This document shows, piece after piece, positions 3,213-38,190 of a stretch of DNA of 64,000 bases (position 1 is its first letter; each line of letters starts with the position of its first letter). The notes under the pieces are model-generated. The model did not search any database, was not told the origin of the DNA, and worked only from the letters and a program-made list of their open reading frames with translations. The position numbers and the translations under genes are program-made. The stretch is from Oculina patagonica (Eukaryota). The DNA lies in assembly GCF_052425735.1 (NCBI RefSeq), contig NC_135759.1, forward strand, positions 28,024,001 through 28,088,000, written 5' to 3'.

Positions 3213-3918
3213 CTACCAATAAGTCATTTGATATCTGGTTCTGTGTTTTACTAAAAGGGTTGCAAAAATCAGTTTCCGGTTGAGGACGTACTGACTTGCC
3301 AAAGCTAATTTCACGGCATGTTAGTACAATAGCAACCAAATAATCGGGAATTGTGTTTTAAAGGCACTCAAAGTTTAGGAAACTTCAACGCATTTCGCAA
3401 AAAGCAGATAAAATCTAAGCGTTGCAATTGATATGTTTTGTTCAGAACGATTCCTAATTTAAAGCTAAAGCACAACAAGTGAAAAAGACATTTTAATTCC
3501 GATTTTCAATATTATAAGCATTAACATTTTCACAATAAATGTACATACCAAGAAATGTCATATTAGATTTCGTATTGGTGTTATTGAATTTAACTTCCTG
3601 AATCATCAAGATGAGTAGAAACCCGTAGTGAAAATCAGTTCAAATAAACACTCTAAAAAACAATATGGATAAATATTTGATAGCCCTATGGTCTTAAACA
3701 ATAAAGTGACCTGCTATTTTATGTGTTCAATAGGGCTGAGTATCAAGGTGGCAGTAGCTTTTGACATTTTTTTAACCCATTGTTGACCCACTTTATGAAG
3801 ATGGAAAATCTTTGAGTTGCTAGGAACAGAAAATATGGTATTCCAAGAAAAAGTTGCTGGTTGACAGCTAAAAGATGCGGTCGCAATTTAGAGCAAATGG
3901 AAAGGAAAATGGACCGAA

Positions 3919-10185: not shown

Positions 10186-13100
10186 AACTCTTTGGCAACA
10201 AAAACATCAACACTCACGTTTGTTTATTTATTTGTCTTCAAAATGTACCGAACTTAGCTTGCAGGTGAGAAATATACATGAAACATAATCTTATTGACCA
10301 GCTGAAGTTGTTATGTACCTTTTACATGATTCTTATCATTGAAACGCACTTAAGTTTTTTGGGTTACATTACTGTTTTAAAATAAAAACGTGCTATATAT
10401 CGCGATGGTTGATATATAAACCAAGACAATAGTTCACCTCAGTGTCGCTGTGCGCTGACCAGAGGGAAGCATCTACCTCGCCGCGTCTTTTTTAAAAATA
10501 TAGTATCTAATACATCTCTCTGACGATTGTGTTGTGATACAGTATCTATTGAAATCTGAAAAGTAGTATATGCTGAAAAGTTTTGCATTGAAACTCGACT
10601 ACAGACGAACTTATAACTCAACGCATTTTCACTGACACAGGCTTAGTCCTTTCCAACCTAAAGTTTATATTGTGCGATTTCCTTAGCCAATCGATCAACA
10701 TCCTCCATGGACAACCCTCCCTTGTCTGTTATGACCTGCAGGCTATTCATCGCAGAACTCGCCTTATCGATTGCTGACACGCTGAGAATGCCATCTTTAT
10801 CCACGTCAACAGTTGCCTCGATCTGAGGCACACCACGCGGAGCCGGTGCGATGCCCTCGAGATTGAAGCAGCCAAGGAGAAGGTTATCTTTAGCAAAACT
10901 TCTTTCGCCCTGGTAGACCTTTACTCCAAAATAAAGTAATTAACATTTGATGACTGCTCCCAAGGAAAACAGTTAATTTTGTTTGTCACCTCGGGAAACA
11001 TTGAGATTCGAGGGAAATAAAATTAACTGGTTTCCCGAGGGATCAGACATAAGTGATTTGTTATGTAGCACAACGAATACATTACAAGATTCACTTGCAA
11101 CAGGGATCGTCGGTCAGCATTCGCGTGTAACAATGTTCGTTAAATTTCGGCTTTTAAGACTTTCCTCCAAAAAGGTAGAAACTAATTTAAGATGCTCGTT
11201 TTTTAAATGGGCGCGCGGAAGAAAATTTAGTGGTGAACAATAAAAAATCTCGGAACTATCGGTCTGATAGTTGCCCCTTGGAAATTTGATGTTCTTAAAA
11301 CTAGCATATTAGTCCGAGAAGCGAAGCTTAACTGTAGAATCCCGGTACCCCGTATGGGCGAATTGTGCAACTTACCGGGATTTTAAAATATTTCAATCGC
11401 AAGTCCTGCAAGTAACATTTGTGTTTGTTAATAAAACAAAACTTACCTGGATTTTAATACCGGGCTGGTTGTCAGCGTAAGTGGTAAAAATTTGAGTTTC
11501 TTTTTTTTGGTATAGTAGAATTGCGCTTGATTAATGACGTCATCACTCCTCCGTCCGTTCAAATTCCTATCGACAGTGGAGCGACGTCCAACAGAAGGAG
11601 GTCTTGGATGGTAGCGCTTCCTTCCTTGCTTACTATGGCAGCATTAACAGCAGCTCAACCCACCACAGCTTCTTCTGGATTGAGTCTTTTGTTCAGTTGC
11701 TTGCCATTAAAAAAGTCAATCAGCAGCTTTTGGATCTTTGGGATGTGAGTAGACCAACCAATCAACAGTATCTCATTTATCTGTTGCTTTGAGAATTTCG
11801 AATCCCTCAGCGCTTTCTCAACTGGCTCTAAAGTGCTTCTAAATAAGTCACCATTTAACTCTTCAAACCTGTTAAATAATAATAATAAAAAAACGTTCGA
11901 TGTGTTGGAGATAGAGTCGGTGACGCTTTACAGAGGTCTTCAAAGCCCGCTACTAATACCCTGCTCTAATGATTTTAAACGCCTCTTGTGAAAAGAGTTG
12001 CCTATTAAGTATTTACCTTTAAATATCATATGCTTGTCTATCAAAAGTTTGGATCTTCATTTAAAACCAGTCTTACGTAAAAGTATTTTTATTAGAGCTC
12101 TAAGAGTTCAAAGAGACGATCAAGAACGAAACTCAGTCCATTCTCCCTGATAACCCTGGTCATTTAAATAATTGCTTCATCCTATAATTATTATTTGAAG
12201 ATAATTTTAAAATCCAAGTTTAAAAACGTTTTTAGGCTCTATTGTATAAATATAACAGTAAAAATCAAGTAGTTCATTATTCACTGAGTATGAGTTCCTT
12301 GAATGAAACATCTGAATTAGAAAGCAAGGCTGCCAATGCCTCCAAAACATCCCTTTCGCAGTCTTCACTTTTTGTATCTGAAAATATCAAAAAATATTTT
12401 CTGTGTTCCAAAAACAATCAAACAAACCTTGCGCGTGTGATAGATGTCTCCAAGTCAAAACTTTCCAAGAGAGCTTTAGCAGAAACGTCAGATTGACCAT
12501 TCGAAGAGAGGATACGCTTGGCCTGTTCAGCTGCAATTCTTAATCGATGATATGCTGGTTCTTTGGTGGAGATTTCTTTTTGGCGTTCCTTCTTTAACAT
12601 TTCCTTTCTTAAGTATTCTGCCACTCGTACGTCGAAGTCTCTTCCACCTAAATGCGTGTCTCCAGAGGTGGACTTGACTTCATAGATTCCTTCCTCTGTC
12701 TGAAGAAAGGAAACGTCAAAAGTGCCACCACCGAGATCAAAGACGAGAACGTTGCTTTCAGCCCCATCGGATTTTCTTTCGAGTCCAAAGGCGACTGCAG
12801 CAGCGGTTGGTTCATTCATGATGTTCAAAACATTGAGGCCAGCAATTATGCCTGTAGGAAAACAAGATTATGTACCTTGATTCCAGAACTAGAGATAAGA
12901 TATATTTTTTCTGCGAGGCCCAACTTAATACGTCGCATTTCAGTCGCTTCGAATGTAGTTTAAGTCCAGAAAAGCTGAAATCGCATTAGTCAAAGCACAG
13001 TAAAACAAGTTATTTCAATGTATAGTATTAATATTTAACAATTATTGGCCGAAGGCGAAGTGAATATTCGCCGAGATTCACTGAGCCTGAGTCGAATAAT

Positions 13101-15309: not shown

Positions 15310-17243
15310 AGTAAATCTTTATTGTGCCTTACACTCCAAAAGGAGGTATTGGTCTAGTTACAATAAAGGTGTTATAGCAACTATGCTAACAAATTACTTA
15401 ATAACAAACAATGAAATTACAATGCAAACGTTTACGGTAATTATTGGACTATTAATTATACAACTATTTATTGATATAACTTTCAATTTAAAATTTCTTT
15501 TCTTTTTTGAAACATTAGGAAGATATATTTAGCTATGATTCTAGAGGTAGCATAATTATCTAGTTTAAGAAGGTACTTTATTTTTTCATGATCAGTTAAA
15601 TCTACAAAGCGAGGATCAGTTTGTGACACGATTGAATGAAGCTCTTTTCTAATATCATTATACCCTTTGCAATACATCAAAAAATGCTGTTCGTCCTCTA
15701 TGTGGTTATCCTTACATACCAAGCACTTTCTTTCTTCAACTGGTATGGATGCTCCTGCATTTTCATATTTTCCAGTCTGTATGCGTAGGGAATGTACCCC
15801 TAATCTTAGTTTAGTTATTTTTATTCGATGCGCTGGATTTTTAACTGTAGTGAGATACTCTTCTAATTGGTAATCTTTTTTAACTTCTTTGTGAGTGAAT
15901 TTTTCTCTAGAGCTAACTGACACGCAATTTCGGACCTTTGACCAATTTTGGAAATAATTTTTTCTTAACCTATGTTTAATTTTAGAGCAAGAATTCGTTG
16001 AAAGTTGTGGGGCTGATGTGTCATTATCGGAGAGAATTCCTAATGCTTCATCATCATTTAATAAACTAACAGATTTAGTATGTTTTTTGGCGTAAAGAAA
16101 TGCATCATTTAATATGGGATTGGTTATCTTATGTTCTAATCTTTGAAAATAGCATAAGATAGATGCTTTAATGTCTATTGCTAAAGGGTATCGACCTAGT
16201 TCTGCTCTACATGCTACGTTTTCTGCATACCATGGTACATTTAATGCTTGTTTGCAAAACCGGATGTGAACTTGTTCAATTGTACTTTTATCGAAATGTG
16301 TTTTGTATGATAAAAGTTCGGGTCCCCATATTTCACAACCATACAAAAGTATGGGTTTAACTAAAGCATCAAAAAGTTTATTTCGTATCACAATTGTTGA
16401 TGAATCAATGTTGGATAGAAATCGTTTAATGATGGAAATAACTTTGGTAGCCTTTTTGCTAATTATTTCTCTTGCATAGGTGTAACGACCAGAAGATGTC
16501 ATTTCTATGCCTAGATATGTTTGTTTGTCGACAATATTTAAAGTTTCATTGTCGTATTTAAAATCTTTTTTGTGTTTGTTCTGACCGTTACCACTAAATA
16601 CAATGATGTTTGATTTTTTGGTGTTTACTTTTAGCTTCCATTCTTGAGCGTGCTTATGAATAACGTCAAGTGATTGTTGCAATCCTTCTGGAGAATCGCT
16701 TAATACTAATAGATCATCTGCGTACATTAGGCAATTAAGTAATTGATTGTTTAATACTACCCCTTTGCATTTGTTGACTCTAAAGTAATCTGGTAAATCA
16801 TTCATAAACAAAGAAAACAGAACTGGACTTAATCCATCACCTTGCCTTATGCCTTTATTGCATGAAAACAGATCCGTTGTTGTGTTTTTATTTATGCGAA
16901 CACAACTCTTAATCGAGGAATACATGGACTTAATGACATTTAGGAATTTGCCTCGATACCGTAACGTTGCAACTTATAAATCAACCCAGACTGCCATACG
17001 CTATCAAAAGCTTTCTCATAATCAATAAAACCAACATAAAGCTTCTTATGTTGTTTAGTGTACTTATGAATGAGTTGTTGCAAAATAAAAAGACTATCTG
17101 TTGTTCTCGCATTTGGTCTAAATCCAAATTGTTCTGGGTTGAGAATGTTGTGAGTTTCGATGAATTTATTTAATCTTGATTGTAAAATTGATGTGAATAA
17201 TTTTCCTAAACAACTTGTTAGAGTAATTCCCCTGTAGTTGTAC
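15310..17243 (-). mobile_element. Non-LTR retrotransposon (RT plus C-terminal CxxC..HxxxxC; RTEX-like), 5'-truncated, inside an HSP70 intron
   Basis: NYRGITL, QFGFR, FIDYEKAFDSV (ORF 16940-17317), then a 1-bp frameshift at ~16955 and GIRQGDGLSPVLF, LMYADD, YLG, LLYGCEIWG, ERKCLVC...EDEQHFLMYC (ORF 15483-16925). The clade label is an inference. Confidence 0.92.
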
Positions 17244-20949: not shown

Positions 20950-22040
20950 TCAAAATGAGACCTTATTAAACGTTTTATTCATACTTATGAAGAGACGAAC
21001 CGACGCTTTCATGAACTCTCGCTTTACTTTTTGTTTATACTTGTGAAGACACAAACCGACGTTTGAACTCAAACTCTTGTTACGATTTTTTTTACACTTG
21101 TGAAGAAACAAACCGACGCTTTGAACTCGAAACTTTTAGTCGCACTTGCGAAGACGCGAACTCACGCTATGAACTCAAACTCTTGTTAAGATTTTATTCA
21201 CACTTGTGAAGAAACAAACCGACGCTTAGAACTCGAAGCCTTGCTTGAATCTTTTAGTCGCGCTTGCGAAGACGCGAACTCGCGCTATGAACTCAAACTC
21301 TTGTTAAGATTTTATTCACACTTGTGAAGAAACAAACCGACGCTTAGAACTCGAAGCCTTGCTTGAATCTTTTAGTCATACTTGCAAAGACGCGAACTCG
21401 CGCTTTGAACTCAAACTCTTGTTAAGATTTTTTTCACACTTGTGAAGAAACAAACCGACGCTTTGAACTCGAAACTTTTAGTCGCACTTGCGAGGACGCG
21501 AACTCACGCTTTGAACTCAAACTCCTGTTAAGATTTTATTCACACTTGTGAAGAAACGAACCGACGCTTAGAACTCGAAGCCTTGCTTGAATCTTTTAGT
21601 CGCGCTTGCGAAGACGCGAACTCGCGCTATGAACTCAAACTCTTGTAAAGATTTTATTCACACTTGTGAAGAAACAAACCGACGCTTAGAACTCGAAGCC
21701 TTGCTTGAATCTTTTAGTCGCGCTTGCGAAGACGCGAACTCGCGCTATGAACTCAAACTCTTGTAAAGATTTTATTCACACTTGTGAAGAAACAAACCGA
21801 CGCTTAGAACTCGAAGCCTTGCTTGAATCTTTTAGTCGCGCTTGCGAAGACGCGAACTCGCGCTATGAACTCAAACTCTTGTAAAGATTTTATTCACACT
21901 TGTGAAGAAACAAACCGACGCTTAGAACTCGAAGCCTTGCTTGAATCTTTTAGTCGCGCTTGCGAAGACGCGAACTCGCGCTATGAACTCAAACTCTTGT
22001 TAAGATTTTATTCACACTTGTGAAGAAACAAACCGACGCT
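20950..22040. repeat. Tandem satellite, 118-bp period made of two ~59-bp related subunits
   Basis: CTTGTGAAGAAACAAACCGACGC recurs at 21545, 21663, 21781 and 21899 (118-bp spacing), alternating with CTTGCGAAGACGCGAACTCGCGC; copies degenerate toward the left end. Confidence 0.92.
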
Positions 22041-22093
22041 TAGCCTGCGAGTAAGCTTTCCGCGAGGAAGAAAAAATCGAAGCTCGCAGGCTA
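22041..22093. mobile_element. Mini-MITE TAGCC...GGCTA capping the satellite
   Basis: TAGCCTGCGAG ... CTCGCAGGCTA inverted ends; no TSD visible. Confidence 0.6.
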
Positions 22094-22440
22094 CATAGGA
22101 ATTTAATTGTGTAATAATATGCGATGCATGCTTAGTTCATCATCAAAGAACCAACTTCTGACAGATTTTCTAGGAGTGACCCATCCTAGTTTCAGAGAAG
22201 CCTGCTATTTAGCTGCCACACATCTGCAATTCTATCTACCTTGTCTAAAAATCTGGACTGGAAAATATAGGAACTTTAACTCAGAGAGAGGTTAAGGTTA
22301 TAAAATACACCACTCGAGTTCAACAGGCAAAAACAAAAAAGTTGTAATTTTTATTCTTTATTGTGCTTAACATCAGCGATTGCACTGTTCACCGTTTGGC
22401 AGGTGTGGCCTCAGCAAAACTTGCATAAGCAAGGAAAATG

Positions 22441-22497
22441 TAGCCTGTGTACATACGTCTTCTATTTCCGTACTGAGAGGCGTCTGCACTCAGGCTA
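22441..22497. mobile_element. Mini-MITE TAGCC...GGCTA
   Basis: TAGCCTG...CAGGCTA ends with 8-bp TSD GGAAAATG (22433-22440, 22498-22505). Confidence 0.75.
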
Positions 22498-22987
22498 GGA
22501 AAATGTAATTTTTTAAATATCTTTTCTCGTATGGTAAACACTAATAAAAGTGCCTTAATAAAACGAACAGAAATTCTCGTAGATCGTGACGATGCTTACT
22601 GAATGCTAAAATAAAGCACTGATGCTTACAAACATCGTCACCTGCTTGCATACTAGATACGCTTTTTTGTTATGAAATTTCATCCAAGCGCCTAGTGGTT
22701 CACGGTAATCTCAACACATCGCGCTATTTTCGCGTTCGCTCTACAAGGAGCTTTATGACTGCTCGCAGTCTAAATTCGTAATTGTTTTCACGTTTATATC
22801 AGACGGACAACAGTCCACTTTTAAACGCTTTAACGTTTTAACCTTAGTACTGTTCACATGGCTTTAGTTCTCTTTGCAAAAACAAGTCTATATAAACATG
22901 TATGCAAAAATTAAACAAAACGAGAACAAAAGTCGTGGTGTTAAAATTAGCTTAAATCATTTCAAAGGTAGGGACAGTAACTTCGCT

Positions 22988-25269
22988 TCAGTGGTGTGCC
23001 GGGCGGGAAGCGGCAGCCGCGGCGGCAGCAACCAAAGCAGCAGAGTTGAGTTGTGCCTTTGACTTCTTACAGCATCCACAGCAGCATGGGCAGTGGTGGC
23101 AACAGTGGCAACAATGGCAGCAGCATGGTTCACAGCAGTGTTCACAGCAGTGGCAGCAGCAGCATGGCTCACAGCAGTGTTCACAGCAGTGGCAGCAACA
23201 GCAAGGCTCGCAGCAGCAGTGGCAGCAGCCACAGTCGTGGCAACAGTCGTGGCAACAGCAATCGTGACAGCAATCGTGGCAGCAATCGTGACAGCAGTCA
23301 CAGCAGCAGTCATGGCAACAATCACCGCAACCACAACAGCAGTCGTGGCCGCAATCACAGCAGCATTTCTTGCTGGAATTTATCTTTTTTCCGATGCCAT
23401 GCTGGGCCGATAAAGCAGCCACAGGTTTCACAGCGCCAGAAACAGCAGCACCTGGTTTGGGGATTGCTTGCCTGGCTTCACCTTCTTTGCACTTACAGTT
23501 GCATTTCTTTTCGCCCTCAGATGTTTCAACACTTTTGCACTTCTTTTCTTGATCCGCTTGAGACTTGGGTGGACATTTCTTCAGTTGATCTTTGTTTTTG
23601 CATTTCTTGTTATCTTTACATGGGCTACATTTTTCAGAGCATTTAGATTTCTTTGACGCCTCTTTGCAATCCTTTTTAGCTGTTTTGGTACAAACGCAGG
23701 GATCTTTAACTTTTTGCTCTAAAACAAGTTGTCGAATACGATTTTAGTAAGCATATCCCCATAATAGTATTATTTATGATAACAATGGCATCTTCAAAAT
23801 AACAGTACTTAATATTGAAATTATAATACTGTTATGGAAACATGACACACTTGCGGGCGAGGTCTTTTTATTGAGTTGGATTTATTAAAATGTGGAAAAA
23901 CATTTGAAAAATTTCTAAAAGGCTTTTTTTTAAAAATACGGGTCATAAGCAACGAAAAAAAATAATTTACTTACCCAAATACAATTTAATAACAATCATG
24001 ATCAAAACGTAGTTGACCAAATTGGGCAATTCAACCTCCATGAGGACATGCCGAACGTCATCATATGATTTTTTTTTCCGTGAAATTTGTCTACCATTTT
24101 TCTGAGAATTCCTAAGAAATTATCCTACTTTCGTGAGTTAAAGATTGTTAAAGTGGTGGCAAGTATATCAAAATGTATTCATGTTCCTACCGTTTTCTGA
24201 TTGACTTTCTTCGTTCGGTGATTCTGAGTCAACAACCATCTTGTTATGTTTCTCTTCTTCTAACTCTTCTTTTGGTGTTATGTTTTTTGATTCATCTGTA
24301 AAGAGGAGCAGATCAACATGTATCATTCTCCCTGTCTGTGTATACTCTTTTGACACATATGACAGCCATCTTTTACTTTGCACTAGTCTATCTAGAAGTG
24401 GCTATTGTGAAAAGGAAATATATATTCTTGCAGTACTGAATACAGTAGGTGTCCTTTGATGTCAACAATCAACTGATTTTTCTTTTTGATTTCCACCCAA
24501 AATGGTTGATACATAGAACTAAAAAGCCACTTTTAGGAGCTTCTCGACAGTTTTGTGCCGTTTATTATTTTCTAGCAGGCCACAGAACAGACTATTATTT
24601 TTAAGGTGATAAAATACACACAAATCTCACAATAAACATCACTCCTTTGTTTAGACAAAACTAACCATTTTCCGATTCGCTGTTTTCATTTGTGGATTCT
24701 AATTCAACCATCTTGTTGTGTTTTTCTTCTTCTAGCTCCTCCTTTGGCTTAACTTTGAATTCGTCTGAAAAACAAGAAACTACCGTTTAATCGATGGCTA
24801 CACAATTCTAAAATGTATTCAAAGGTCAATGATACCATTTTCTTTGCTTATGGATTTTCCCTCCACCAAAGTCACTTTTAGGAGCTTTTCGACAGTTTTG
24901 TTTGTTTATTATTTTCTTGCAAGCCACAGGACAGACTATTATTTTTAAGATAATACAATGCACGCAAATCTCACAATAAACAATACATCACTCCTTTGTT
25001 TAGACAAAACTAACCATTTTCCGATTCGCTGTTTTCATTTGTGGATTCTAATTCAACCATCTTGTTGTGTTTTTCTTCTTCTAGCTCCTCCTTTGGTTTA
25101 ACTTTGAATTCGTCTGAAAAACAAGAAACTGCCGTTTAATCGATGGCTTCACAATTCTAAAATGTATTCAAAGGTCAACGATACCATTTTCTTTGCTTAT
25201 GGATTTTCCCTCCACCAAAGCCAAGGCGCTAAGAGCGATGCACAAAACGGTTACAAGTTTCACACGCAT
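22988..25269 (-). CDS. Secreted ultra-Cys/His-rich protein (cluster gene 3, ~372 aa)
   Basis: Exons 25269-25185 (signal MRVKLVTVLCIALSALALVEG), 25113-25015, 24764-24666 and 24295-24191 (three copies of a Glu-rich exon), and 23718-22988; all introns phase-1 GT-AG and the frame is open. The last exon has a Lys/Cys region, then 59 Cys in 99 residues (CCHD, EPCCCCH repeats) and a poly-Ala tail. Confidence 0.85.
24527..25221. repeat. Recent ~348-bp tandem duplication containing a coding exon
   Basis: 24527-24872 and 24873-25221 are near-identical, each carrying the 99-nt DEFKVKPKEELEEEKHNK exon. Confidence 0.88.
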
Positions 25270-28200
25270 ATTGCTGTATCAATTGAAACAAACAACGTAA
25301 AGACAAAAGGCTAATAGTAAGTGTTTGATATCCGAGGAAAATGAGAACGTATTACATCACAGGGAGGCGGCGGTGGACAGATGGTTCAGAGCACGTATAT
25401 GTCATTTGCTGCTGGTAAACTTTCCCCCTTGTTTAGCGCTTGTGTAAATCACGCCTACAAGCTTGCTTGCTATTGGTGAAAAAACGCGATACCTGATAGT
25501 CACTTGAGCACCACTTATCTTACAGCATGCAGGTCGTTTTATCTCGCTAAGTTTCACTTTCGCTTAATTATTCACGCTTAAAAGAATTGTCGGAACAATT
25601 GTAAAACGAATTCGACGGCGAATTGCTCCCTTCCACTCGATGCCCGCATTAGAATTCCCTACATGTACAGTTTACAAAGATCTTCTGACATGATTGCTAT
25701 AGGAATATACGGTTCATATGCTTTTAGGTACTATTGATCAAATAAAAAAGAGTTGAAAATTTCTGGAATGGAATATGGAAAACGTATTAGGTTCTGACTC
25801 GTAAGTACAAATTGAATAAATTTGGATAAATTAAAACGAGAGGGTATTCTTTGTAAACAGTAAATTGTACTTAAAATGAAAAGGAACAACTTCGTTATTT
25901 AGTTTTCGGGTTTGTTTTGTTTGCTTGATGACGCTATTAACAACGATAATGAGAAACACGTGAAATTTTGAAATGCATATCAATGGTTACTCTAGTGCTC
26001 TCCAAGCATAAGTGGAAAGTAACTGAAATTAATGTATAATCTGATAAAATGCCTAGCCGAAGTAGAAGGCATCACAGCTGTGCATTTTTGCACTCGTTAA
26101 TGCAAAAACTTAAACAATCTTGACACATATGAAAGACACATAAAAACACTTGACTGTTATTGTTTCAGTAAACGACCTTTCTAATACAATCAAATTCATA
26201 CAAGGCGAACGAAAAACGGAGTACTGAGGCATAAACTAATAACCACACTACGACCATTACAGCATTGCAAACTGGCTTTTATTCCATGGTTCAAGGTAAT
26301 GAAATATCCCAAGCTTTAAGTATCTAAAGATGAAAATAAACAGGTTTAAAAATGGCGTGGGGTGAATTAATATTTACACCTCTAGCCAAAACATTTAGCT
26401 CCACCTCGACTCCTCCTTAAAGTAGTAATTAAACGTCTTCGGTGATGCATGAAGAAAAATAAAAAGTAGATCAAATTTATTGATTTACCGCTGACTTTTT
26501 TGGCGAAAGAATGAGTCTGTTTCTTATGGAACTTTGGAAAAATAGTGTCTGTGTCGACCTAAATTTTGTAAACTGCATGGTATGTCGGTGTTGCAAAAGT
26601 TTTAGTTTTCACTTTTGCTGTGTGAATTAACCAGTTTAGTTAATAGGATTGCTCTTCGAAAACATTTTTCATTTTGATAAACACTTGTTCGCCTTATAAC
26701 TTCTCTGATAAGTGTTCTTTAGGAATTTATGCTAAACAGTAGCTTGTTCGTTTCCAAAAAGGAAATACAAAATGATTTAAATGCATGCTAATATCTTCTT
26801 AAAAAAGTTTTTTCCCATCTTATACTAAATTCACGATCATTTTAAGGCCGCCATTTAAAAAGCTCCCTCGTTTTGCTAGTGACATGGGATGAACGTAGAC
26901 AAGAGATCGGCCCAGTTTCTGGGCAGTTTGCATTATTTTTTTGGTATCCGCCATTACCAACAAGTCTGTCGCTTTTTCTTCGCATGTTAAAAAAGTAGCC
27001 GCCGTAGTTCCTTTAACGACATCAGCTTGTTCCACAATGAAATCAGTCATATTCTTGTTTCAACCTGCGGTAATTATACCTTTCTTTACTTTTGACCGCT
27101 TTTGGGGTGTTCCGTAAGAGACCTCTGCGATTTGGTTGCACAAATCAACACTTTTAGTAATATACTGTTGTCTAAGTTCATTTAGAGCTCTTTCTATAGC
27201 TCAATGCCGCCTTAAAAATGTCTATCTGATGAAAACAAAATTTGATGACTCCTGAAAAAGAAAATTAAAATCGTTTTGAGTAGACGGTTTTTTCTCGCTG
27301 TCTTTTGCTTGCGAACGGAGATGGAAAAATTGGTCAAATGAAAGTCAAGCTCACTGTCAGGTATGTTTTTAATTTGTCTAGCCTCTTTCATCGACTGACA
27401 AAATATTCTTACAGGCGTTTGAGTCGGTTTTAGATGTGTTGAGTACTCTCTGGCTTCTGGCCTTGCAGTTGACTTCGCAATTTCGTCTCCAGCTGGTGTT
27501 TTGACTGCATACCTGAGCTGACGATAAATTTGCTCGTTCTCGTTTTCCTTAGCTCTACCATTTTAGTATTTTTAGCAAAAGCAATTCTCTGATAAAAATG
27601 AAATGTTCACGAGCGCGGGACAAACAAGAAAATCCGAGTCCCCACCACGAACCCATGGCCTCCCAGATACCGGTTGGGCGTTCTAACCACTGAGCTACAA
27701 GGGACTATGAAGGTCTATGCTTTTGTATTTTTCGGTTGACAATTTTCCCGCCGCAAATTTAACAGCTATAGACCGGTCTAAATGAAAAAGAAAACCTATA
27801 CCATGGTTAATATTGATTTTAGGCATCAAAATTTACGAATTCGGTAGTTCCCAGTCCTTGTGAGACGCGCCCATGATTATAACAATTTCAGTTGTAACCG
27901 TTGGCCAATCATGGAGGCCAATGATCAAGAATTTCTAATGTTAATGGAATTGATGATTGTTGTCGCGGAAAGGTGACTGGGACATATAACACTTTGGCAT
28001 TCTCTGAAGATTAAGTCCATGGCTCGTTTTGTGTTTTTTTATTTTTTGGGAGGGAGAGGGGGGGGGGGGGGGGGGGCCTAAATCCGGGGCTGAGACAACA
28101 GCTTCTTAAAGGCTGCCAAAGTTTTGTCCGAATAACCTGCCTTAGGAGTTTAGTAAGATCCAAGCAAAGAGAAATGAATATAATGCGATGTTACAGCTCT

Positions 28201-28576
28201 CTATTTGTATTCCGGGTGCAATACATGAAATTTAATCAGTATCATTTGACCAAGAAGCAACCAATGAGAGCGTGTAAATTCAATTAAAGAGTTCATCTTA
28301 TTTGTCCTTATAAAGGTGTCTTCTATTAAATGTATATTATTTCTGAATGCCTGATTTAAAATAACAACGAAATATCGAATAAAATCATATTCCTATTCAC
28401 TGCTAGTGTGTAAATAAAACGGGTACAAGACTCCACTGCGACACCTTACACTCCACACCTCAACTCTTAAAAATGTTGTATTTTAAGAAATAAATTATAT
28501 GCTTTTACACAAAATAGGCAGTGAACGGTCAACCAAACTTAAGTACAACAAGAGAAAACACTTTAAATCACTTGAA

Positions 28577-29327
28577 ATGAAGAGCATTGCTGTCGCTATC
28601 GTCTTAAATGTTCTGCTCGCTTTGATTGCATTTGGGGAAGACACGAACGAGCTGAGAATACAGTCTCTATTTCTCACGAAAATTAAAGATATGGTATTAA
28701 GCAGTGAATCTGTTAAGTCAGGATCGGGAAAGGCTCCAACAAATTCAGGGTAAGTTAAGAATTTTATGTTAAGAGACGAGCGTAACTAAGATGAAAAGAA
28801 ATGAGAAAACATTTTTTGTTTAAGAAGTAAAATATCTCCAATTTAGAATTCATGATAAAAAACGTTCGTTCCAAATATTATGCTCTGGTGAATAATGCAG
28901 GAATCGTGTGCAACTTGTGCCCTTAAGCTTGGCAAAGGGAAAATTTTCACGTTTGTAAAGCTAGCTTGTAGCCACGTTATTGCTTTCAACCGTCTCTAAT
29001 TCGTTATCACACGGTTTAGAAGCAACCTAAAAAAGAATGGTTCTTACAGAAAAGAACCTGAATCTCGTTTGGAAGGTTTGTTTTATCTGGGCATTTTATA
29101 TATGTTAAGTTAAAGTTAACTTGAAAAAGTTTGATTAAATTTTCCTTTATTACAGGATAACAACCCCTCAAAAGGGAAAACAGTACGCGAAGAGCAACGT
29201 GGTAAAAAGGTACGCTAGTCCACAATGGACGTATGGGTATCCATGGCCGTGGCCACGTCAAAACGATCAGCCACAACAGTCGCGCATGTCGTCAAGGGCC
29301 CCAGGATCCAAAGGGAGACAGCATTAA
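28577..29327 (+). CDS. Small secreted prepropeptide (cluster gene 4, 114 aa)
   Basis: Exon 28577-28749 (signal MKSIAVAIVLNVLLALIAFG; donor GG/GTAAG) and exon 29156-29327 (polypyrimidine-TACAG acceptor, phase 2) give ...NVVKR-YASPQWTYGYPWPWPR-QNDQ...; AATAAA at ~29474. Confidence 0.7.
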
Positions 29328-30029
29328 TTACTCATTCTACTCGAAATTTAATGAACCTGTCGTTGTCTCGGGGATGCACACTATCATCAGTTATCTAAAT
29401 TACCACAACACGGTGTCAAGGAGAATTTGAAATGCTACTACCCCTGACTTAAGCTTAGTGTCTTGATGTGAGCAATAAAGCAAGCAATGACATCTGAAGA
29501 AGTACTTCTCACAGGTTTTTGCACTTTTTAATGAAACTTCTGTTTTCTCTTATACCTATATTTTATTCTTCTTCGAAACTAAAACATATAAGAAAACATC
29601 TGTCACACTGTGCAACATGCATGTCATGTGCTGGATGCTTACCATAAAACCTACAAAATAATCCTCCGTGAAAACCAGTTCCTTTGTTTGCACGCGTCGC
29701 CTTAAAAGGCAATAAACACTGTGGTCTCAAGCGTCAATTTATTTCTTGGGATTTTAATTTGTGTTCTTTCAATATACAACTTAGCCTTCTGGGGTTAGAG
29801 CAAACCAGTCATCGAGGCCAAAATAAAAATGGCCTTTACTTTATTATCTTACTGGCTAGCCGTCTTTGCATCCTAAAAGGTAATATATGTAGGTGATGGA
29901 CTCATGTTTTCGTTTCTGTGTCTGTGAGCAATTGTCTTTAAAAATGTGGCGGAAAGGATGTTCAAGGCGATGAGGCATACTCTACCATTCAAATTAATAA
30001 TTGAAATGTCAAATCAAAACTTTGATATC

Positions 30030-33000
30030 TTAGTGCACCCTTAATGGTCCTTCTCGTAACGGTGAGTAACCATGGCCACTGTATGGTCTACTGAAATAAG
30101 GGTGCGGAGTGACCATGTAAAGGTAGAGCGGCCCACTGAATAATGAAGGTGACAAGGGTCCTTGAGATCGCTTACAGTGACAGCAGTGACAACAGCATGG
30201 GCAACAGTGGCAACAATGGCAACAGTGGCAGCAGTGGCAGCAAGGACAGCAATGATGATGGTGATGATGAACATGATGACAGCACTGATGGCAGCACGGA
30301 GTAGGACAACATGGACAACAGCAAGGACAGCAGCATGGCTCCTCTGGTTTCTTCTTCGGCGCTTCCTCTGCACCGGGTATCGGACACCAACAACCTAAAG
30401 GATACAGGAATTAATAGATAAGACAGTTGGCGTAAGAATCCATTTGAAAGATGAAAAGGATTTGCCTTTTAAACGAAACACAACCAGGTGCATTTTAGTG
30501 TAATTAAAAAAATTACATGCAACGTAGGGAGCCTTGGTTGCATAGATTTTATTGCGGTTTCCATAAAGGTTTTTCAATGCTGTCTTACCTTCATCCCAAC
30601 GATGTCAGTTCTTTAAGGATTAAATTTTTTTATTTTGTAAACGCTAACTATTTAACAATAACCCAGGATTCAACGTGCGTCGAGGGTTAAATTTCTCTTG
30701 TATGCAAGTGCTTTTTAGTGCTTGTGTATTGTGGTGTTTGAGATTAGTCGACATCAAAAGTTGAGGACAGAAACTCTAACTTAACTTAACTGAAAAGGTA
30801 AATACTAAAATTAAAATTCAAGCTAATCCTAGATAAGCTTAATCTTGGCTGAACAACTCGGCTCTCGCCTTGGACAGTGTTAGCCCAGCGGAATACTTTA
30901 TTTATTTTCCTATCAGCCAATTAAGTGCTTCCACCTTGTTCTTCGCTTGATTAAATTAATTCAATATCACTGTGACAAGTCACAGACTAGGGAACCCATG
31001 GTTAAATCTCCCTAACACGTGTCCTTATCCTAACTAAGGGCCTATCAATTTCATGCCGCATGCATTAAGTTCGCTGTTAAAGCTTGGTTTACACGTAGGA
31101 CGCACGCGGGCATAAGCATAAACACAAGCACAAGGGTATTCACACTTACGATAAGCATAAGCACAAGGCGACAGTATTCATTAAGTGGTTCAACATTGGG
31201 CTTATGCTTATGCTTGCGTCGTAGGTGCAAACCAGCTATAATAGACACCCAAGAGGCATGATACAGGACCGCCTGTGCTTGCATCATTCTGGTTTACTCA
31301 AGCAAAGCAAGCCCAAGTGCAAACAAGGAGAGACTCCTTTTCTTATGAATACACTTATGCTTGCTGTAGTGCTTGTGTCATACCCAGTTTACTTACACGT
31401 GCTTATGCGTATTATTGCGTTGTACGTGTAACCTAGCATTAACAGTTGTACTCGGTGTTGAAATCGTCATGATCGTTCTACATCATGGTCATGCGGATAG
31501 AAATTGACAAACCTTCATCGCATTCATGGTGACAACAGTCACATTCGCAATGCGGCATGCAGCCACCAACACATGGCTGACAACTATGGCAAATGTGGCA
31601 TCCTGAAAAACAAATTTATACTTCAACATGGTTTACAGCCAACGTCTATGGAGACATGCGTGGCCTAGTGGCTAGGGCACTGGACTTGTAATCCGAAGGT
31701 CCTTGGTTCAAATCCTCCTCCCTGGAATGACTTTATGGATTTGTGTTCGGTGCTCCCAACAAAGTCAACTGGTCTGCCCCCCGCCAGTTGAGATTTTGAT
31801 TTTATTTATTTGTTAATTAAAGCGCCACAATCTAAACATTAGCCAATAAAGTTGTTAATAAGCCAATTAAGTCAGTAATTTAATTAAAAAATTATTTTTT
31901 TAAGGAAACATTTGTATAGGGCGGGACATGTAATTGAACAGTCAAGGCTAATACGCATTTCAAACTCTTTGGCATAAAACTCCGAATAAAGTTTCAAATA
32001 ATAAGGTAATACAGTACTGAAATGGAGACAGACAATCGGATCAGAAGAAACTATATATCTAAAGCATACCATTTCGTTTTCCCTTAGCTCTTCCTACATC
32101 ACTGCTTGGTCCTTTAGTGAAGGACTCGGGTCTGCAAATAGAAAGCATGAAGTACTTCAGTACAGCACAGTACAGACAGCACATCACAGATAAAAAATCA
32201 TATCACTGAAAACTAGTTCTGATTACAAAAGAAGTATGACAGTGGTAGCTTTTGAACTCTATAGTAGAAGTAGAAGTAGAAATTAATAAACGAATATCCC
32301 CCCCCCCCTGGATTTTCCACATTTACACCTAAAGCCTGTAGCATACAAAACGTATACTGTTGATGAGACTGCATACAGTTAAACCCCGGTAACTCAAACT
32401 CTGAAGGGTAACGAAAAACAGTTCGAGTTAGCGAGGTTTTCGAGTTAACCGAGTAAAAAAGACTGAAAAGTGGGTCCAAGGGAAATAGAAGTTAGTTCGA
32501 GTTAGCGGGGTTGTTCGAGTTATCCGAGTTCGAGTTACCGGGGTTCTACTGTATTTTGTTTACTCGTGCTAAAGATACAACTTGTTCTTTAGTAACGTAA
32601 CAATGAAAAATAGTTCAAGTATAAGCTAGATTTCCAACTAATTTAGAAATATTCAGATATGCTCATCATTTACTTCATTTCGTTTACAATTTATTTACCC
32701 AATCTGTAAACCTTTCTTGCAAGGAGGAAAACCCTCTCCTTTTTCCACAGGTCAGTGATTTTTGTGTCTTTAAATTAAAATGGTCGATGGTCTCTTGACA
32801 TTTTTCGTTATTTCACAACCAACCTGAAAGCGGCTTCTCTTTGGTCGCGTTTTTTAAATCCATTTTTCACTGTTTAAATTTATTTTTATTATTTCTGTCT
32901 TAATTTATATCAACTACCTTTAAAATATCATCAAAGTTTTACAATATATACAATGTAGGAACGCAAAACGCATAAACAAACTATGAGAGAATGAAATCAT

Positions 33001-33220
33001 CCTACCTTATTACACTCGTTGCTGTTTGTAGCTTCCCAGATGTCCTCCTTGTAGAAAATCCTTCGTTAGTTTTCAAGTTACCATCTTTCCGTCCAATCGC
33101 GATTATTTTTGGGAAAACCGAGGGTCTTTTGTTACTCCTGTGAAAAACTCCTTCAGAAACGACGGCGGCATAGAATATGACAGTCGAAAATAAAACATTT
33201 ACGAGGATTTTCGGTTTCAT
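30030..33220 (-). CDS. Secreted Cys/His-rich protein (cluster gene 5, ~243 aa)
   Basis: Exons 33220-33006 (signal MKPKILVNVLFSTVIFYAAVVSEG), 32131-32070 (...GKRN), 31602-31513 (CHICHSCQPCVGGCMPHCECDCCHHECDE) and 30394-30030 (CWCP...EPCCCPCCCPCC...CCHHVHHHHHHCCPCCHCCHCCH...CKR-SQGPL...). Phases are compatible. The coding frame of the last exon is absent from the ORF track. Extra or degenerate exons (~32700-32870, ~30590) are possible. Confidence 0.72.
31077..31442. mobile_element. MITE with (GCATAA)n subterminal repeats
   Basis: Imperfect TIRs TTAAAGCTTGGTTTACACGTA / TACGTGTAACCTAGCATTAA; CATAAG/CTTATG repeats in opposite orientations. Confidence 0.6.
32376..32551. mobile_element. Tc1/mariner(pogo)-type MITE
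   Basis: TA-CAGTTAAACCCCGGTAACTC ... GAGTTACCGGGGTTCTACTG-TA: TIRs plus TA duplication. Confidence 0.85.
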
Positions 33221-34874
33221 TTCCTTCTAGATAAGTCCCATGTTTTCTTAAAACTGGGTCCTATTGGAAAAATTGCATGGTCGAAATTATATTTTTACCT
33301 ATGGATCAATTCAATTTCGTTTCCATACGAGTAAATTATAAATCTTACATCACAGCTCCATTCAATGCCCGTCCCTCCTCTTTTATTTTTAACGCTTCAA
33401 GTAAACCAGGTCATGGGAATCACACTAGAGTGAATATCATTGGGTTAACATGGCATGTCTATTTCTGGTACCAGCGAAGGAAAGTTTGCTGGTCGTTTTC
33501 TTCTCCGTGAAAAGAAACAAACGCCAGCATTCATAGACACACAAACGTGTGATTAAACCAAATTAAAATCTACAAACAGCTTTAAACTTTCGCCTAATTT
33601 ATCAATTGAAGGTCACTGAAAAGCATTTAGCGAAGAGACGACGACTTGTTTTTTGAAGCTGGTAGAAAGTGATACAATTTCACGCTGCTTTGCGTTTTGG
33701 AATGTAATAATCACGTGCACCTCACGATATATTTGTCTATGGCCTGGGAGGATCCGTAGTCTCCAGTAAATTCATAGTATTTTTTTTTTAAACCGGAGTC
33801 ATCGCCGGTCAAAACTGTTTAAAACTATTTCAACAGGTGCAGTAATACCATTCTTCTTTTCATCACTGCAATAATTGATCCGGACACTTCTTGCCAGAGA
33901 ATTCCAAGTAACGTATTTGAAAATTACAAAACATATATAGCAAACATATAGAAAGAAAAGTGGACTATTCTCTTGTGAAAAAAGCGAAATAAATTACTAT
34001 AGCGACAGACAGAAGGAACAAATAGAAGAAAGTATCTGATTTGGGGCATGCGCAGCAAGCCAACTAATCTTTGTAGACCGACTTTTACTCCACTGAAGAT
34101 TTGTGTTTTTATTTGCGTGTTACAATGTACGAATTGAAATTACCCAGAAATAAACGCGAAGCATATATTAAAGCACATAGTTATCTTTTATGACCTAACG
34201 TTTACTCCACTTGAAGGAAATGTAAATAGAAGAAACCTTTCTCACATTTAATCAACGATAAATATAAAGCATCCGTCTGGTTAAGATTCAGACCGAGTAC
34301 AATTTTTAAGTCATGACTGTACTTTTTTCTTTGACTTTCTTCGCTTAATTTTTGTTTTTATACACATCTGATCTTAAAACTAACAGGTTGCTTGCAACTT
34401 CTTGTCTTTTAGACACTTCAAATGCGGTTCTTTAATATCAGTGTAATTAATTTCCTATATTTACACTTGGGTAATCAATCTCCACTGAGAAAAGCGAAAC
34501 ATGGCAAACACAAACACCTGACAAATTTCAACTGTTCACAGGGTATTTTCTTGGAACATACCAAGTTATACTATTAGTATTTACTATTATTACAGTCTAG
34601 ACATCTTATATCAATTTCCTCGCACATCTGAGCCAATTCATTCTACAGCTTCTTAGTAGTGATACCATAACTGAAACGGTGTCACGTGACGACGCAGGTG
34701 TGCCATATGCTGGTAAAATCGTTTAGAATATGGAACCTTGGTCCTGTTGGTTTAAAATAAATACAACAACCATTACTGAATTATTTTTACTGTGAAGTCA
34801 TTTTTGCCGTTACTGGTAAAAATGAGTTATTCTATTAGGATCTTCCTTTTTCTTCAGATTTTACTTTACTTACT

Positions 34875-34997
34875 TGTCTGTTTGTTTGTTCGGTTAGTTG
34901 TTTGGTAAGTTGGTTGGTGGGTTGGTGGGTTGGATTGTTGGTGTTTGTTTGTTTGTTTGTTTGTTTGTTTGGTTGGTTGGTTGGTTGGTTGGTTGGC
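34875..34997. repeat. (TTTG)n/(TTGG)n microsatellite
   Basis: Direct reading. Confidence 0.85.
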
Positions 34998-35114
34998 TAT
35001 TTTATGCACTCTGAATTTTTAGGTGAATATAAACTTCAGGTTTGCTTGGACATATTGTTAAAACGTAGCTGCATTAAAAAGTAGGTTGAAACCATTTATC
35101 TTGGGCACCCTAAA

Positions 35115-36383
35115 TTATTTTTGTTTAACATGGTTGCACCTTCAAAAAGGCGGCAGAAATATGTTGATACCGATTGAGACCCTTGGGAACTCTTTTCCAG
35201 TTACAGTACAATTCAACATAAACTTACCTCTTGAGGAAAGTTTCGGCACGTCGATAGGCCGGGAAAAGATACCCTGGTGGAAGTATAAGCTGGCGCCGAT
35301 CTCCTTTCTCTTCCTTTTTGCTTTTACTTGCTTCTTTACCTGCCTCTGTGTATACAAGCATTAAAACTGACTTTACTTTAAATTCACTTAAAATGATCAA
35401 GTTCATAGACTGTGAGAAATGAACGATGCATTACCTTCATTGTCAATTGCAAAAATATCATAGTGATAATCACCGCATTCGGTGGTGTATCCACAGCAAC
35501 AGCAAGGCGTAACCTGACAAGGACATCCACATCCCGCTAATCCACAGCCACATGGTGTAGCGCAGCCACAGGATCCAACACAGCCGTTGCAGAGAGGATC
35601 CGAAAATCCACATCCACAACTGCAACCGCCTCCACAACCGCAGCCGCAGCTGCAAGGCTGAGCACATCCGCAGCCACACATCTGCTGACATCCACAGCAA
35701 CAGGGCTGTGCACAGGTGCAAGGGCATTCATGAGTGACGTGATGAACGTGATGCACACAACAATCGTGATGCACGCAACAGTCGTGATCGTGTTCGTGGT
35801 GATGACAGACGTCTTGATGACAACAACAGCAAGGCTGACAGCAGCAACATGGCTGACAACAACAGCAAGGCTGGCAGCAACAGCAGCAGCCACAGCAGTT
35901 GTTGTTTCCGGAATTTTTGTCACCGTTTTTATTATTATTATTATTTGTTCCACAGCAACAGCCACACCCACAACAATTATTGTTATTATTGTTGTTGTTT
36001 TCGTCCTCGTTCTTGGCAGCTGGTTTGTTCTGATCGGCCTGTGTCGTCTGCCGGGCAGGCGGTATAGCAGTCTGACTGGGTTGCTGACTTTGATTTAGCT
36101 TCTCGGGCTTATTTTGAGGTAAATGTTGCTGTGCCGCCGGTTTGATTACATCATGAACACTCTGTTGGTTTGGCAAAGACGGAGCTGAGTTAAAATTTTG
36201 AGAAGGCGCATTCTTTACCATTGGAGGTCCAAGTCGTAGACTCGGATTTCTCAAAACCTGGTTACCACGAGACTGAACACGGGGTTGTTGATTATTTCCA
36301 TACACCGGATTAGGAGCAATTGCATTGTCAGTTGTCAAAACGGCACTTAAGATAGCCAACATCCATATAGACAGAAATGCCAT
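35115..36383 (-). CDS. Secreted Gln/Pro-, poly-Asn-, Cys/His-rich protein (cluster gene 6, ~363 aa)
   Basis: Exon 36383-35435 (signal MAFLSIWMLAILSAVLT; Q/P-rich region; N-runs; CCCCQP x3; HHHEHDHDCCVHHDCCVHHVHH; CGCGC), exon 35345-35228 (DRR-QLILPPGYLFPAY-RR) and a probable last exon 35139-35115 (less certain). Confidence 0.82.
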
Positions 36384-37226
36384 TTCTGAGGATCTCAAAT
36401 GAATCGTGTGAAAAGTAGGATGTGCCAAATCACTTAAGTCAAATTGAAAAGGTGGGTAATAGCGCATTACCTCATAAAACAACCTGTTTAATCACTTCAA
36501 AAATCGCTTTAGCTCGTTGACATGTACTATTAGACAATAGAAACCTGACAGATCTACAAATCGAAAACAATACGATTTGTGGTTTTGTCAACACTAAGTC
36601 AATAAAAACGTTTAGAATTTGGTAGTTAATATATTGTAAGAAACGATGCAGGTACTAGAAGATCGTACGGTGGTGAGATGGTAAATCACTGCAGTTAAAA
36701 CATGTTTCAAAATTTTCAGTAGCCTTTACCTCTAGCAGGTCATGAGAACGAAAGGTTGTAACAGTGTAGAACTAAGAGATAAATCACACTCAGGAATTAA
36801 TTCCTTCGCGGTGAATTATCACGATATATGAAAACTAAGGAAAAAATTTTATACAGATCACTAAAAGGAAAGGTTTATTCTGCCACAAGTTAATTATCAA
36901 AAGGGAGTTAGCCTTTTGTTGGAAGAAGAACGCCAGTAAGCGATTAGCTAAATAGTTCTAACGTTACAATGTATGCCGCTGCACGATCAAACGAATATTG
37001 GAGTCCATTGAGATAACAGTGAAACTCTCGTTCTCCAGGTAAAATTTCCGTGCATGATAAATGAAGTACATCGTACGGCAGGTCTGACTGTTTTCATAAA
37101 ACAACGCCTGTTTGTAACCTAAAATACTGAACTGTTTTTAAGAAATTGACTTTTTATATAATTTTAGTTTCATCTACAAACTGTGATTTTCTAAAAAACC
37201 TCAGATTTTTCAAAGTAGGTAACCAC

Positions 37227-38190
37227 TTAACAATTATTCTTTGAAATCGAGGTGAATAGTGGTAGAATATTCACCGAGCCGCGGAGCGGCGAGTTGAATA
37301 TTCTGCCGCTATTCACCTCGATTTCAAAAAATAATTGTTTTAGTATATACACACGAAGTGATCTCAACAGCAAGCGATTTTTAGAAGGAAACCATTTAAA
37401 GTCGATTTAATTGACCTCTCAATTCATGCGTGGAAAACGTACATACAAGCGGCACTAACCGACATGCGCGAAACAGTTTACAGAATCTTCAAACATGGCA
37501 AATCTAGTTAATCTTCGATAAAATCCTCGTCACAATCTAGCAAAATGGTCCTTTAACACCACTCAAACCTGCAATCTGAATCAAAAACCTGCTTGCAAAA
37601 CATTTTGACCGTTGAATCAAAGCTTTTGAAGTTCACTTGAATTGAAAATTGAAAGAGCAGTTGGCGAAGGATCCACCTGAAAGTTTGGATTATACTGAAT
37701 GTGTGCAGAACTGTGGTGAAAACTGGATGTTTTCTTGCACAAAGACGTTTTCCTGAATATTTGTGGAGGATCTTGGTTGAATAACACTTGATGTTGCTGC
37801 CGATAAATCTGCGGTATTCATTTCTCTGATTTCTGCCGATGCCGGGCGAAGAGCGCGACTTGACGGTAAGCAATTGTTTATCGTTTTAGTACTCGAGTTG
37901 TGTGGACATTGTGCTGCAAATTGCGAAATATGTAGTCGTCTTTTACTTTGAAAACCATCAGGCCAAATTTCTTAGCCTTTTTTTGTCTTTTCTGGTTCAG
38001 CATCTTCTTGTATTCTTAGTATTTGCGATTCAGAAACGCCGGCGAAACGCAGGTTTACGCCGGCCATTTTGTTTCAGTTTGGATCAAGCATTATTCACTC
38101 CCTACGGAGTGAATAATGCTCATTAGCCCGAGATAGCGAACCAATCAGATTGCTTGAAACACCAAGATCACTGAGTGTGTTTATACTAAT
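37227..38190 (-). mobile_element. Non-autonomous element with terminal hairpin and a Crypton-like N-terminal peptide relic
   Basis: Large palindrome ~37227-37340 followed by TAGTATA, whose complement TATACTA is at ~38183; minus strand from 38067 reads MAGVNLRFAGVSESQILRIQEDAEPEKTKKAKKFGLMVFK. A similar hairpin lies at ~13035-13112. Confidence 0.5.

Follow-up and report, generated by a model that had tools for sequence, protein, structure and literature searches.

Metallothioneins combine a very high Cys content with C-C and C-x-C motifs, have no aromatic or hydrophobic core, do not fold without metal and, in some cases, use His as an additional ligand. Here, we describe a coral gene whose product resembles them in these respects, including the combination of Cys and His, and which also carries a Lys/Cys-rich segment. 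The gene lies on the minus strand of Oculina patagonica, at positions 22988–25269 of a 64,000-nucleotide stretch (NCBI RefSeq assembly GCF_052425735.1, contig NC_135759.1, positions 28,024,001 to 28,088,000 of the forward strand); this whole stretch is referred to as the window, and coordinates are those of the window unless stated otherwise. Metallothioneins are cytosolic and contain about 30% Cys, whereas the coral family reaches 60–71% Cys in a core that, in this gene, spans 99 residues of a 372-residue protein. With this length and a typical signal peptide, the product is not a small cytosolic protein of the metallothionein kind. We identify it as a genuine gene with five exons, belonging to a hitherto undescribed family that occurs in stony corals and probably also in sea anemones.

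The other described Cys-rich systems show similar partial likenesses. Ultra-high-sulfur keratin-associated proteins are repetitive, Cys-rich proteins of low complexity with a candidate cross-linking role, but they are intracellular proteins of mammalian hair, contain about 35–40% Cys and have Ser, Pro, Gln, Gly, Lys or Val between the Cys; the coral protein, from a stony coral rather than a mammalian hair cluster, has no match to Pfam Keratin_B2 or Keratin_B2_2. Minicollagen and NOWA domains are cnidarian, pass through the secretory pathway and contain clustered Cys, but they hold 6 Cys in about 20 residues, have a defined fold and are flanked by polyproline and collagen Gly-X-Y stretches. The coral sequence has no Gly-X-Y run and no polyproline, and matches to the pattern CX3CX3CX3CX3CC are trivial at such a Cys density; a minicollagen was therefore rejected. 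Galaxins are secreted coral proteins with repeated Cys-Cys pairs, but these pairs are about 10 or more residues apart. The secreted SCRiPs, a taxonomically restricted Cys-rich coral family (PMC2652719), are small and have 8 Cys, and both SCRiPs and galaxins are far from 60% Cys or from an alphabet of six amino acids. The Cys string of DNAJC5 (cysteine-string protein), with about 14 Cys in 24 residues, reaches a comparable local density, but it is short, cytosolic and palmitoylated and belongs to a J-domain chaperone, whereas the coral protein has a signal peptide and no J domain.

A Pfam-A search (hmmscan, E ≤ 1) returned no family for the last exon of the gene, its Acropora digitifera ortholog or the two neighbouring paralogs, and membership among the metallothioneins, keratin-associated proteins or galaxins was rejected for this reason. 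The original prediction, made from the DNA letters, had compared the protein with the first two of these groups; the comparison holds for composition but does not extend to a sequence-family relationship at this threshold. The models PF00131 and PF12749 gave no match in the coral's own genome, but the controls of that search were likewise unmatched, so it says nothing about absence. Cys-rich, low-complexity proteins that bind metal or form cross-links are a known kind, and the secreted version with 60–71% Cys, six amino acids and an ancient gene cluster lies well outside the known examples.

The core is delimited by the outermost Cys of the dense region, and six residue types account for all of it: 59 Cys (59.6%), 16 His, 10 Asp, 5 Glu, 5 Gly and 4 Pro. 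The predicted 59 Cys in 99 residues, interleaved with His, Asp and Glu, is exact in the minus-strand translation of 22988–23719, and the roughly 60% Cys that had been proposed is recovered in the spliced 372-residue product. The claim that nearly every core residue is a potential metal ligand also agrees with the residue count: 90 of the 99 side chains could bind metal as Cys thiolate, His imidazole or Asp/Glu carboxylate, the other nine are Pro or Gly, and hydrophobic residues are absent. The Cys occur in runs of two to four with one or two residues between runs, and the underlying DNA is built from 12-nucleotide (CCHD) and 39-nucleotide (CCEPCCCCHCCEH) repeats whose periods are all multiples of three. 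In a six-frame scan of all 64 kb, a density of at least 14 Cys per 40 residues was reached by only four segments, located in three minus-strand genes. AlphaFold2, run with a nine-sequence family alignment, gave a mean predicted local distance difference test score (pLDDT) of 34.5 and no structure except a weak helix over the Ala run of the tail, and a feature search of the ESM Atlas found no usable match for the family.

The span first noted, 22988–23718, is the last exon including the stop codon, but it is not the whole gene. Read on the minus strand from 23719, this exon is free of stops through a Lys/Cys part, a linker, the Cys-dense core and an Ala-rich tail ending in HH. Immediately upstream is an acceptor (ttttAG), followed by three short exons, each of phase 1, and an exon with the ATG. 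Joining 25185–25269, 25015–25113, 24666–24764, 24191–24295 and 22988–23718 yields 1119 nucleotides and 372 residues, with GT..AG ends at every intron. The parts of the gene are as follows.

25185–25269, minus strand: coding part of exon 1, with the ATG at 25269, an open frame and the donor GTATCG; an RNA-type contig covers 25185–25369 and joins 25185 to 25113.

25015–25113, minus strand: exon 2, 99 nucleotides, phase 1, encoding the acidic repeat DEFKVKPKEELEEEKHNKMVELESTNENSESEN; it has AG/GT flanks, contig cover and a joint that goes back 99 nucleotides.

24666–24764, minus strand: exon 3, a near-identical copy of exon 2 with an open frame; one run joins exon 4 to it at 24666.

24191–24295, minus strand: exon 4, 105 nucleotides, phase 1, encoding a third and more divergent acidic repeat in an open frame; joints 23718>24191 and 24295>25015 or 24666 have CT..AC ends.

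23462–23718, minus strand: start of the last exon, encoding the Lys/Cys-rich region (residues 130–215) with 12 Cys, 25 Lys, a net charge of +12 and the C-x-C motifs DPCVC and CNCKCK.

23366–23461, minus strand: linker (residues 216–247), IPKP...QHGIGKK.NSSKK, with two conserved dibasic sites directly before the core in columns that are invariant in the family alignment.

23069–23365, minus strand: the ultra-Cys core (residues 248–346), in the order (CCHD)n, (CCEPCCCCH)n, HCCHCCHHCPCCCGCC.

22988–23068, minus strand: the tail KKSKAQLNSAALVAAAAAAASRPAHH and the stop codon (22988–22990); coral subfamilies A and B both keep KKSK and the terminal HH unchanged.

The 5′ untranslated region (UTR) reaches at least 25369 and the 3′ UTR continues past 22700. 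The signal peptide that had been proposed is present, though in a separate exon 1.5 kb upstream of the noted span: it comprises residues 1–21 (25207–25269) and is followed by KSISKEN. The N-terminus, MRVKLVTVLCIALSALALVEG|KS, begins with charge, continues with a stretch of 15 hydrophobic residues that carry none, and has positions −3 and −1 occupied by Val and Gly, respectively; it is shaped like a typical cleaved signal peptide that would lead to secretion. The Val −3/Gly −1 form is also present in the Acropora and Pocillopora orthologs, and a signal peptide is kept in the Acropora, Pocillopora and Porites proteins as well as in a protein of the sea anemone Actinia. The protein is divided into blocks of alternating net charge, with −21 for the Glu-rich acidic repeats, +12 for the Lys/Cys region, +6 for the linker, −15 for the core and +4 for the basic tail. 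A 349-nucleotide tandem duplication (24523–25223, 93% identity) generated exons 2 and 3. The duplicated segment extends from the 3′ end of exon 1 through intron 1 and exon 2; the second acidic exon is present in the mRNA, and a non-functional copy of the exon-1 donor region remains within intron 2.

Evidence for transcription came from public sequencing runs. Parts of the window are present in 18 runs from six studies, 13 of which hold only about 0.24–0.32 of the sampled words, corresponding to the exonic share. Contigs of three runs, each from a different study, and one raw-read run were compared with 22700–25400, the RNA nature of these runs being a guess. In all three contig sets the exons are covered and depth is zero over the introns. 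The contigs join 23718 to 24191, 24295 to 25015 or 24666, and 25113 to 25185, and the skipped pieces begin and end with CT..AC on the plus strand, that is, GT..AG on the minus strand. The joint that goes back 99 nucleotides places both duplicated acidic exons in the mRNA. Three introns are thus removed in contigs of three studies, consistently with the minus strand, and contigs that lack the introns and show canonical splice ends, recovered in three studies, are hard to explain except as transcripts. One raw poly(A) run contained no reads on the gene, and the presence of the organism in that run is unproven. Only one frame of the mRNA contains a long ATG-started open reading frame (ORF), of 372 residues compared with at most 118 in the other frames, and core length variants of 3, 12 and 99 nucleotides in other samples are all in frame.

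Selection on the core was examined in a protein-guided codon alignment of orthologous last exons from the window and five other contigs. Across 84 aligned core codons, the window and A. digitifera sequences differ 2, 2 and 39 times at codon positions 1, 2 and 3, respectively, which amounts to 37 synonymous and three replacement codons, and TGC and TGT are switched in 23 of the 50 Cys-Cys pairs. The remainder of the same exon shows 20 synonymous and 69 replacement codons in this comparison. The third-position pattern recurs in all ten pairwise comparisons among five distinct sequences. Since a protein-guided alignment could favour such a result, a plain nucleotide alignment made without reference to the frame served as a control; in this control, the counts at the three codon positions came to 15/13/38 for Acropora and 17/11/43 for a Pocillopora-like contig, with gap lengths always divisible by three. 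Because the third-position bias also holds in the frame-free alignment with its in-frame gaps, we conclude that the Cys frame is translated and that no part of the protein is more tightly constrained than the core, which is under strong purifying selection.

These results bear directly on the concern that the region has no coding function at all and is a (TGC)n-like simple repeat that is open by chance, or that another frame or strand is used. The DNA is indeed repetitive, and two further frames are also open across the core. However, the splice joints set the strand, only the Cys frame reaches an ATG, substitutions fall nearly all at third positions, indels are all in frame, and the amino-acid pattern is kept across coral families. 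We regard this explanation as exceedingly improbable, and both the simple-repeat and the other-frame versions are refuted by the splice joints, the codon-position test and the single long ATG-started ORF. Transcription from the opposite strand, another frame or a lack of expression, which the original prediction had named as grounds for abandoning it, fail against the same joints, ORF and third-position substitutions. A decaying microsatellite was likewise rejected, as orthologs retain the amino acids while swapping TGC and TGT.

To define the family, several protein searches were combined. A word-indexed search found five proteins and an exhaustive phmmer search over 1.84 billion cluster representatives found four clusters, while a search with a family profile returned 14 proteins, adding the older subfamily B and LOC116292266 of Actinia tenebrosa. 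The protein collection searched contained no protein identical to the product of the gene studied here. Orthologs are present in Acropora (A. digitifera, A. millepora, A. cervicornis and A. muricata), Porites, Pocillopora and Oculina. The Pocillopora damicornis ortholog is a partial protein. A TARA contig near Pocillopora has the full core and a tail ending ...SRPIHH, with one extra A in a pre-core homopolymer (L007:3970-3995) that shifts the frame; its downstream Cys frame is open to the conserved HH stop, and in another contig (protein P0011) the frame changes at a different run of A. Both frameshifts are probably sequencing errors.

The shared layout consists of a signal peptide, a Lys/Cys region with C-x-C motifs, a G-K-K..S-K-K linker, a six-letter core with CCHD, CCEPCCCC and HCCH in this order, and KKS. 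The Cys positions and motifs of the Lys/Cys-rich region are kept in orthologs, the G-K-K...S-K-K arrangement recurs in subfamily B and in the Actinia protein, and all three groups share the motif order and the flanking KK and KKS. Their cores are made of C, H, D, E, P and G only, plus a single Asn. The Cys content is 60–65% in subfamily A, 70–71% in subfamily B, whose cores span 56–60 residues (Porites harrisoni ABFA07_010807 included), and 68% in the Actinia protein. The latter combines a signal peptide, an acidic part, a Lys/Cys C-x-C part, a hydrophobic linker, G-K-K...S-K-K, a core with CCEPCCCC and HCC, and KKS. Profile comparison linked it to the family with a probability of 98%, a value possibly inflated by composition, and a 74-residue flank is 35% identical; a composition-adjusted BLASTP search of the Porites subfamily B protein against it gave E = 1.7, which is not significant. 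For this last reason, we consider the Actinia protein only a probable homolog.

The gene order, with the GCWCPIPG...HHHHHH...CCHCC gene followed by subfamily A and subfamily B, is common to Porites, Acropora and Oculina. These genera span both major stony-coral clades, and the gene cluster therefore predates that split. A literature search using the automatic names, accessions, motifs, coral metallothioneins, spirocytes, Oculina cell atlases and polycysteine found no paper describing the family. Its members are nevertheless already in databases as automatic predictions with misleading names, the Acropora proteins being called 'keratin-associated protein 10-4-like', '10-6-like', 'hypothetical protein' or 'neurogenic locus notch homolog protein 1-like'. 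The keratin-associated protein 10-4-like and notch homolog 1-like labels are composition artefacts. The automatic names of XP_015752613.1, XP_029200839.2 and XP_067038140.1 reflect Cys composition only and are misleading.

For the function of the core, we tentatively favour, at somewhat less than even confidence, a metal-thiolate/imidazole cluster domain that works either extracellularly or within the secretory pathway. The signal peptide would direct the product into the secretory pathway, and the core, presumably unable to fold alone, would be organised by metal ions, with thiolate and imidazole groups binding Zn(II) and/or Cu(I) clusters. By analogy with the approximately three Cys per metal ion in metallothioneins, one molecule might hold about 20 ions. 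Such a domain could store or buffer large amounts of metal, or could act as a node that cross-links secreted or vesicle-borne protein material through both metal and disulfides. As every non-turn core residue can gain or lose a proton, it seems plausible that binding switches with pH when the protein passes from an acidic secretory vesicle into seawater (pH 8). The data show the gene model, its transcription, strand and frame, the strong purifying selection, the conservation of alphabet and motif order, and the conserved gene cluster; that the protein is secreted, binds metal and is proteolytically processed, and where it acts, we infer.

One reason for favouring metal coordination is that the spacers are limited to metal ligands and turn formers, whereas a cross-linker should tolerate Ser, Thr, Gln, Lys and Arg. 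The two neighbouring paralogs, likewise rich in Cys and His, fit metal binding. Low-complexity regions of Cys and Lys have been reported as typical of metallothioneins (PMC11132505), and the middle region of the protein is similar. The genome annotation of A. digitifera includes a metallothionein expression activator and no metallothionein gene (PMC3750612), which would leave a metal-buffering role unfilled in corals. Several points weigh against the metal-cluster domain. The protein has no sequence relationship to any Pfam metallothionein family (hmmscan, E ≤ 1). MTF-1-type metal response elements are not enriched: the upstream 1.5 kb contain one TGCRCNC, compared with 0.59 ± 0.78 per 1.5 kb of background. 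Oxidising conditions in the secretory pathway favour disulfides over free thiolates. Finally, the neighbouring genes look like structural low-complexity proteins (silk-like or rich in Gly, Trp, His and Tyr), a setting that fits a structural cross-linker equally well.

This last point leads to the principal competing explanation, in which the dozens of core thiols form intermolecular disulfides that cure or harden secreted or vesicle-borne material. Candidate sites are the cnidocyst wall, the tubule, the spirocyst thread or a matrix made from products of the surrounding cluster. The walls of cnidocysts harden as the Cys-rich domains of minicollagens and NOWA exchange disulfides. The signal peptide and the passage through an oxidising pathway would suit such a role, as would the location among secreted low-complexity genes without Pfam match, including silk-like, Gly/Trp/His/Tyr-rich and GGC-repeat proteins, and the distribution in corals and a sea anemone suits an organelle or tissue of Hexacorallia at large rather than the skeleton. 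However, only H, D, E, P and G occur as spacers, with hardly any change over a very long divergence, while keratin-associated proteins tolerate others; moreover, the Gly-X-Y and polyproline features of minicollagens are absent, as is a propeptide ending in KR. We regard a pure disulfide cross-linker as the main rival, somewhat less likely than the metal-cluster domain. The conservation of the six-letter alphabet across corals and a sea anemone, together with the lack of a predicted fold, is compatible with either a metal sink or a disulfide hardener, the two roles originally proposed.

Another conceivable role is that of a skeletal organic-matrix protein of calicoblasts that takes part in aragonite formation; the acidic repeats would bind calcium or mineral and the Cys core would form a cross-linked framework, as an extreme galaxin-like protein. 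All secure orthologs are from stony corals, and the order of an acidic N-terminal region followed by a region rich in Cys-Cys loosely resembles acidic galaxin-like proteins, which have been described in Acropora. Tryptic skeletal proteomics would also miss the protein, given a core with neither Lys nor Arg and only tiny fragments from the Lys-rich part. Against this, a protein of the same layout occurs in a sea anemone, and anemones do not calcify; no Pfam match was found, galaxin repeats included; and the acidic exons, of which Oculina has three and the Pocillopora model apparently none, do not form the conserved part. A search of supplementary files from the skeletal proteome study of O. patagonica (PMC9532382) found none of the family motifs, which also counts against a skeletal role. 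We consider this role improbable.

The dibasic sites on either side of the core (..GKK....KK|core|KKSK..) are conserved, which suggests that the core may be cut from the precursor there. Alternatively, a bioactive product such as a peptide, toxin or antimicrobial could be released at these sites from a precursor in which the Cys core is a carrier or pro-region: G-K-K and K-K upstream and K-K-S-K downstream of the core are conserved in subfamilies A and B and in Actinia, and the signal peptide is followed by an acidic pro-like region. However, the core and not its flanks is the most constrained part, no repeated peptide copies are present, and the Pfam scan gave no similarity to known cnidarian toxin or peptide families. 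We consider this explanation very unlikely.

The surroundings of the gene contain the two further Cys/His-rich genes.

30033–30395, minus strand: last exon of the upstream neighbour, a Cys/His gene (GCWCPIPGAEE...CCCPCCCP...HHHHHH...CCHCCHCC) found at the same position in Acropora and Porites.

35406–36383, minus strand: a third Cys/His-rich gene with a putatively secreted product; its first large exon encodes the signal peptide MAFLSIWMLAILSAVLT, CCCCQP repeats and an H/D/E-rich block.

The last exon of the studied gene has a second genomic copy 41 kb away that differs at 2 of 729 nucleotides. This copy is within a 16-kb block (window 22040–37233, corresponding to G000:C2:28005112-28020910) that holds the gene and the two neighbouring Cys/His genes, with an identity of 97.5% over the gene and 87–96% elsewhere; each copy adjoins a gap of 500 N. 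The block may have been duplicated in tandem recently, or one of the copies may be a retained haplotype. Subfamily B was found beside the other gene copy only. This Oculina subfamily B gene, outside the window at G000:C2:~28001700-28002400 and 4 kb downstream of that copy, has a 64-residue core of about 69% Cys, ends in ...KPQHH and is orthologous to A. digitifera L003:16520-17179 and to P. harrisoni ABFA07_010807.

At least ten further ORFs for secreted-looking low-complexity proteins are located at 2637–6477 and 39760–60311. Among them are a (GGGAA)n silk-like protein whose N-terminal part is rich in Cys, proteins rich in His, Arg, Pro and Tyr, acidic proteins with RRRC and GGC repeats, and proteins rich in Gly, Trp, His and Tyr; eight neighbouring ORFs that were scanned had no Pfam match. 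The ORF at 54763–55656 is identical to O. patagonica ACROYT_G006686 and has Montipora relatives. The region of the silk-like gene (2384–7528) has an inverted copy at G000:C2:27974242-27979440, with 93–94% identity, about 50 kb upstream of the window. By eye only, reverse-transcriptase-like ORFs, an Hsp70-like fragment ORF and a tRNA-like short interspersed element were noted in intergenic DNA (8076–8702, 12418–12828, 15483–16925 and ~27640–27700).

With 60–71% Cys on a predicted secreted protein, the core is, as far as our searches show, the densest conserved cysteine domain found. It raises the biochemical question of how such a chain passes through the oxidising endoplasmic reticulum and whether its end state is metal-loaded or locked by disulfides. 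Since the core has no trypsin sites and the Lys-rich part would give very small tryptic pieces, standard proteomics is blind to it. If the role is structural, the family would point to a new cross-linking chemistry in a hexacorallian material and provide a way into a whole cluster of secreted low-complexity genes that are as yet uncharacterised. Metal handling is poorly understood in corals, where metals bear on stress, symbiosis and the geochemistry of the skeleton. In a broader and more speculative view, which we hold to be rather unlikely, Hexacorallia would carry ancient, clustered, secreted 'super-metallothioneins' with cores of 56–99 residues and about 20 metal ions each, in vesicles or outside the cell. 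If true, this would constitute a previously unrecognised system for metal handling or curing, one that tryptic proteomics would have missed, and could explain why no canonical metallothionein has been found in coral genomes.

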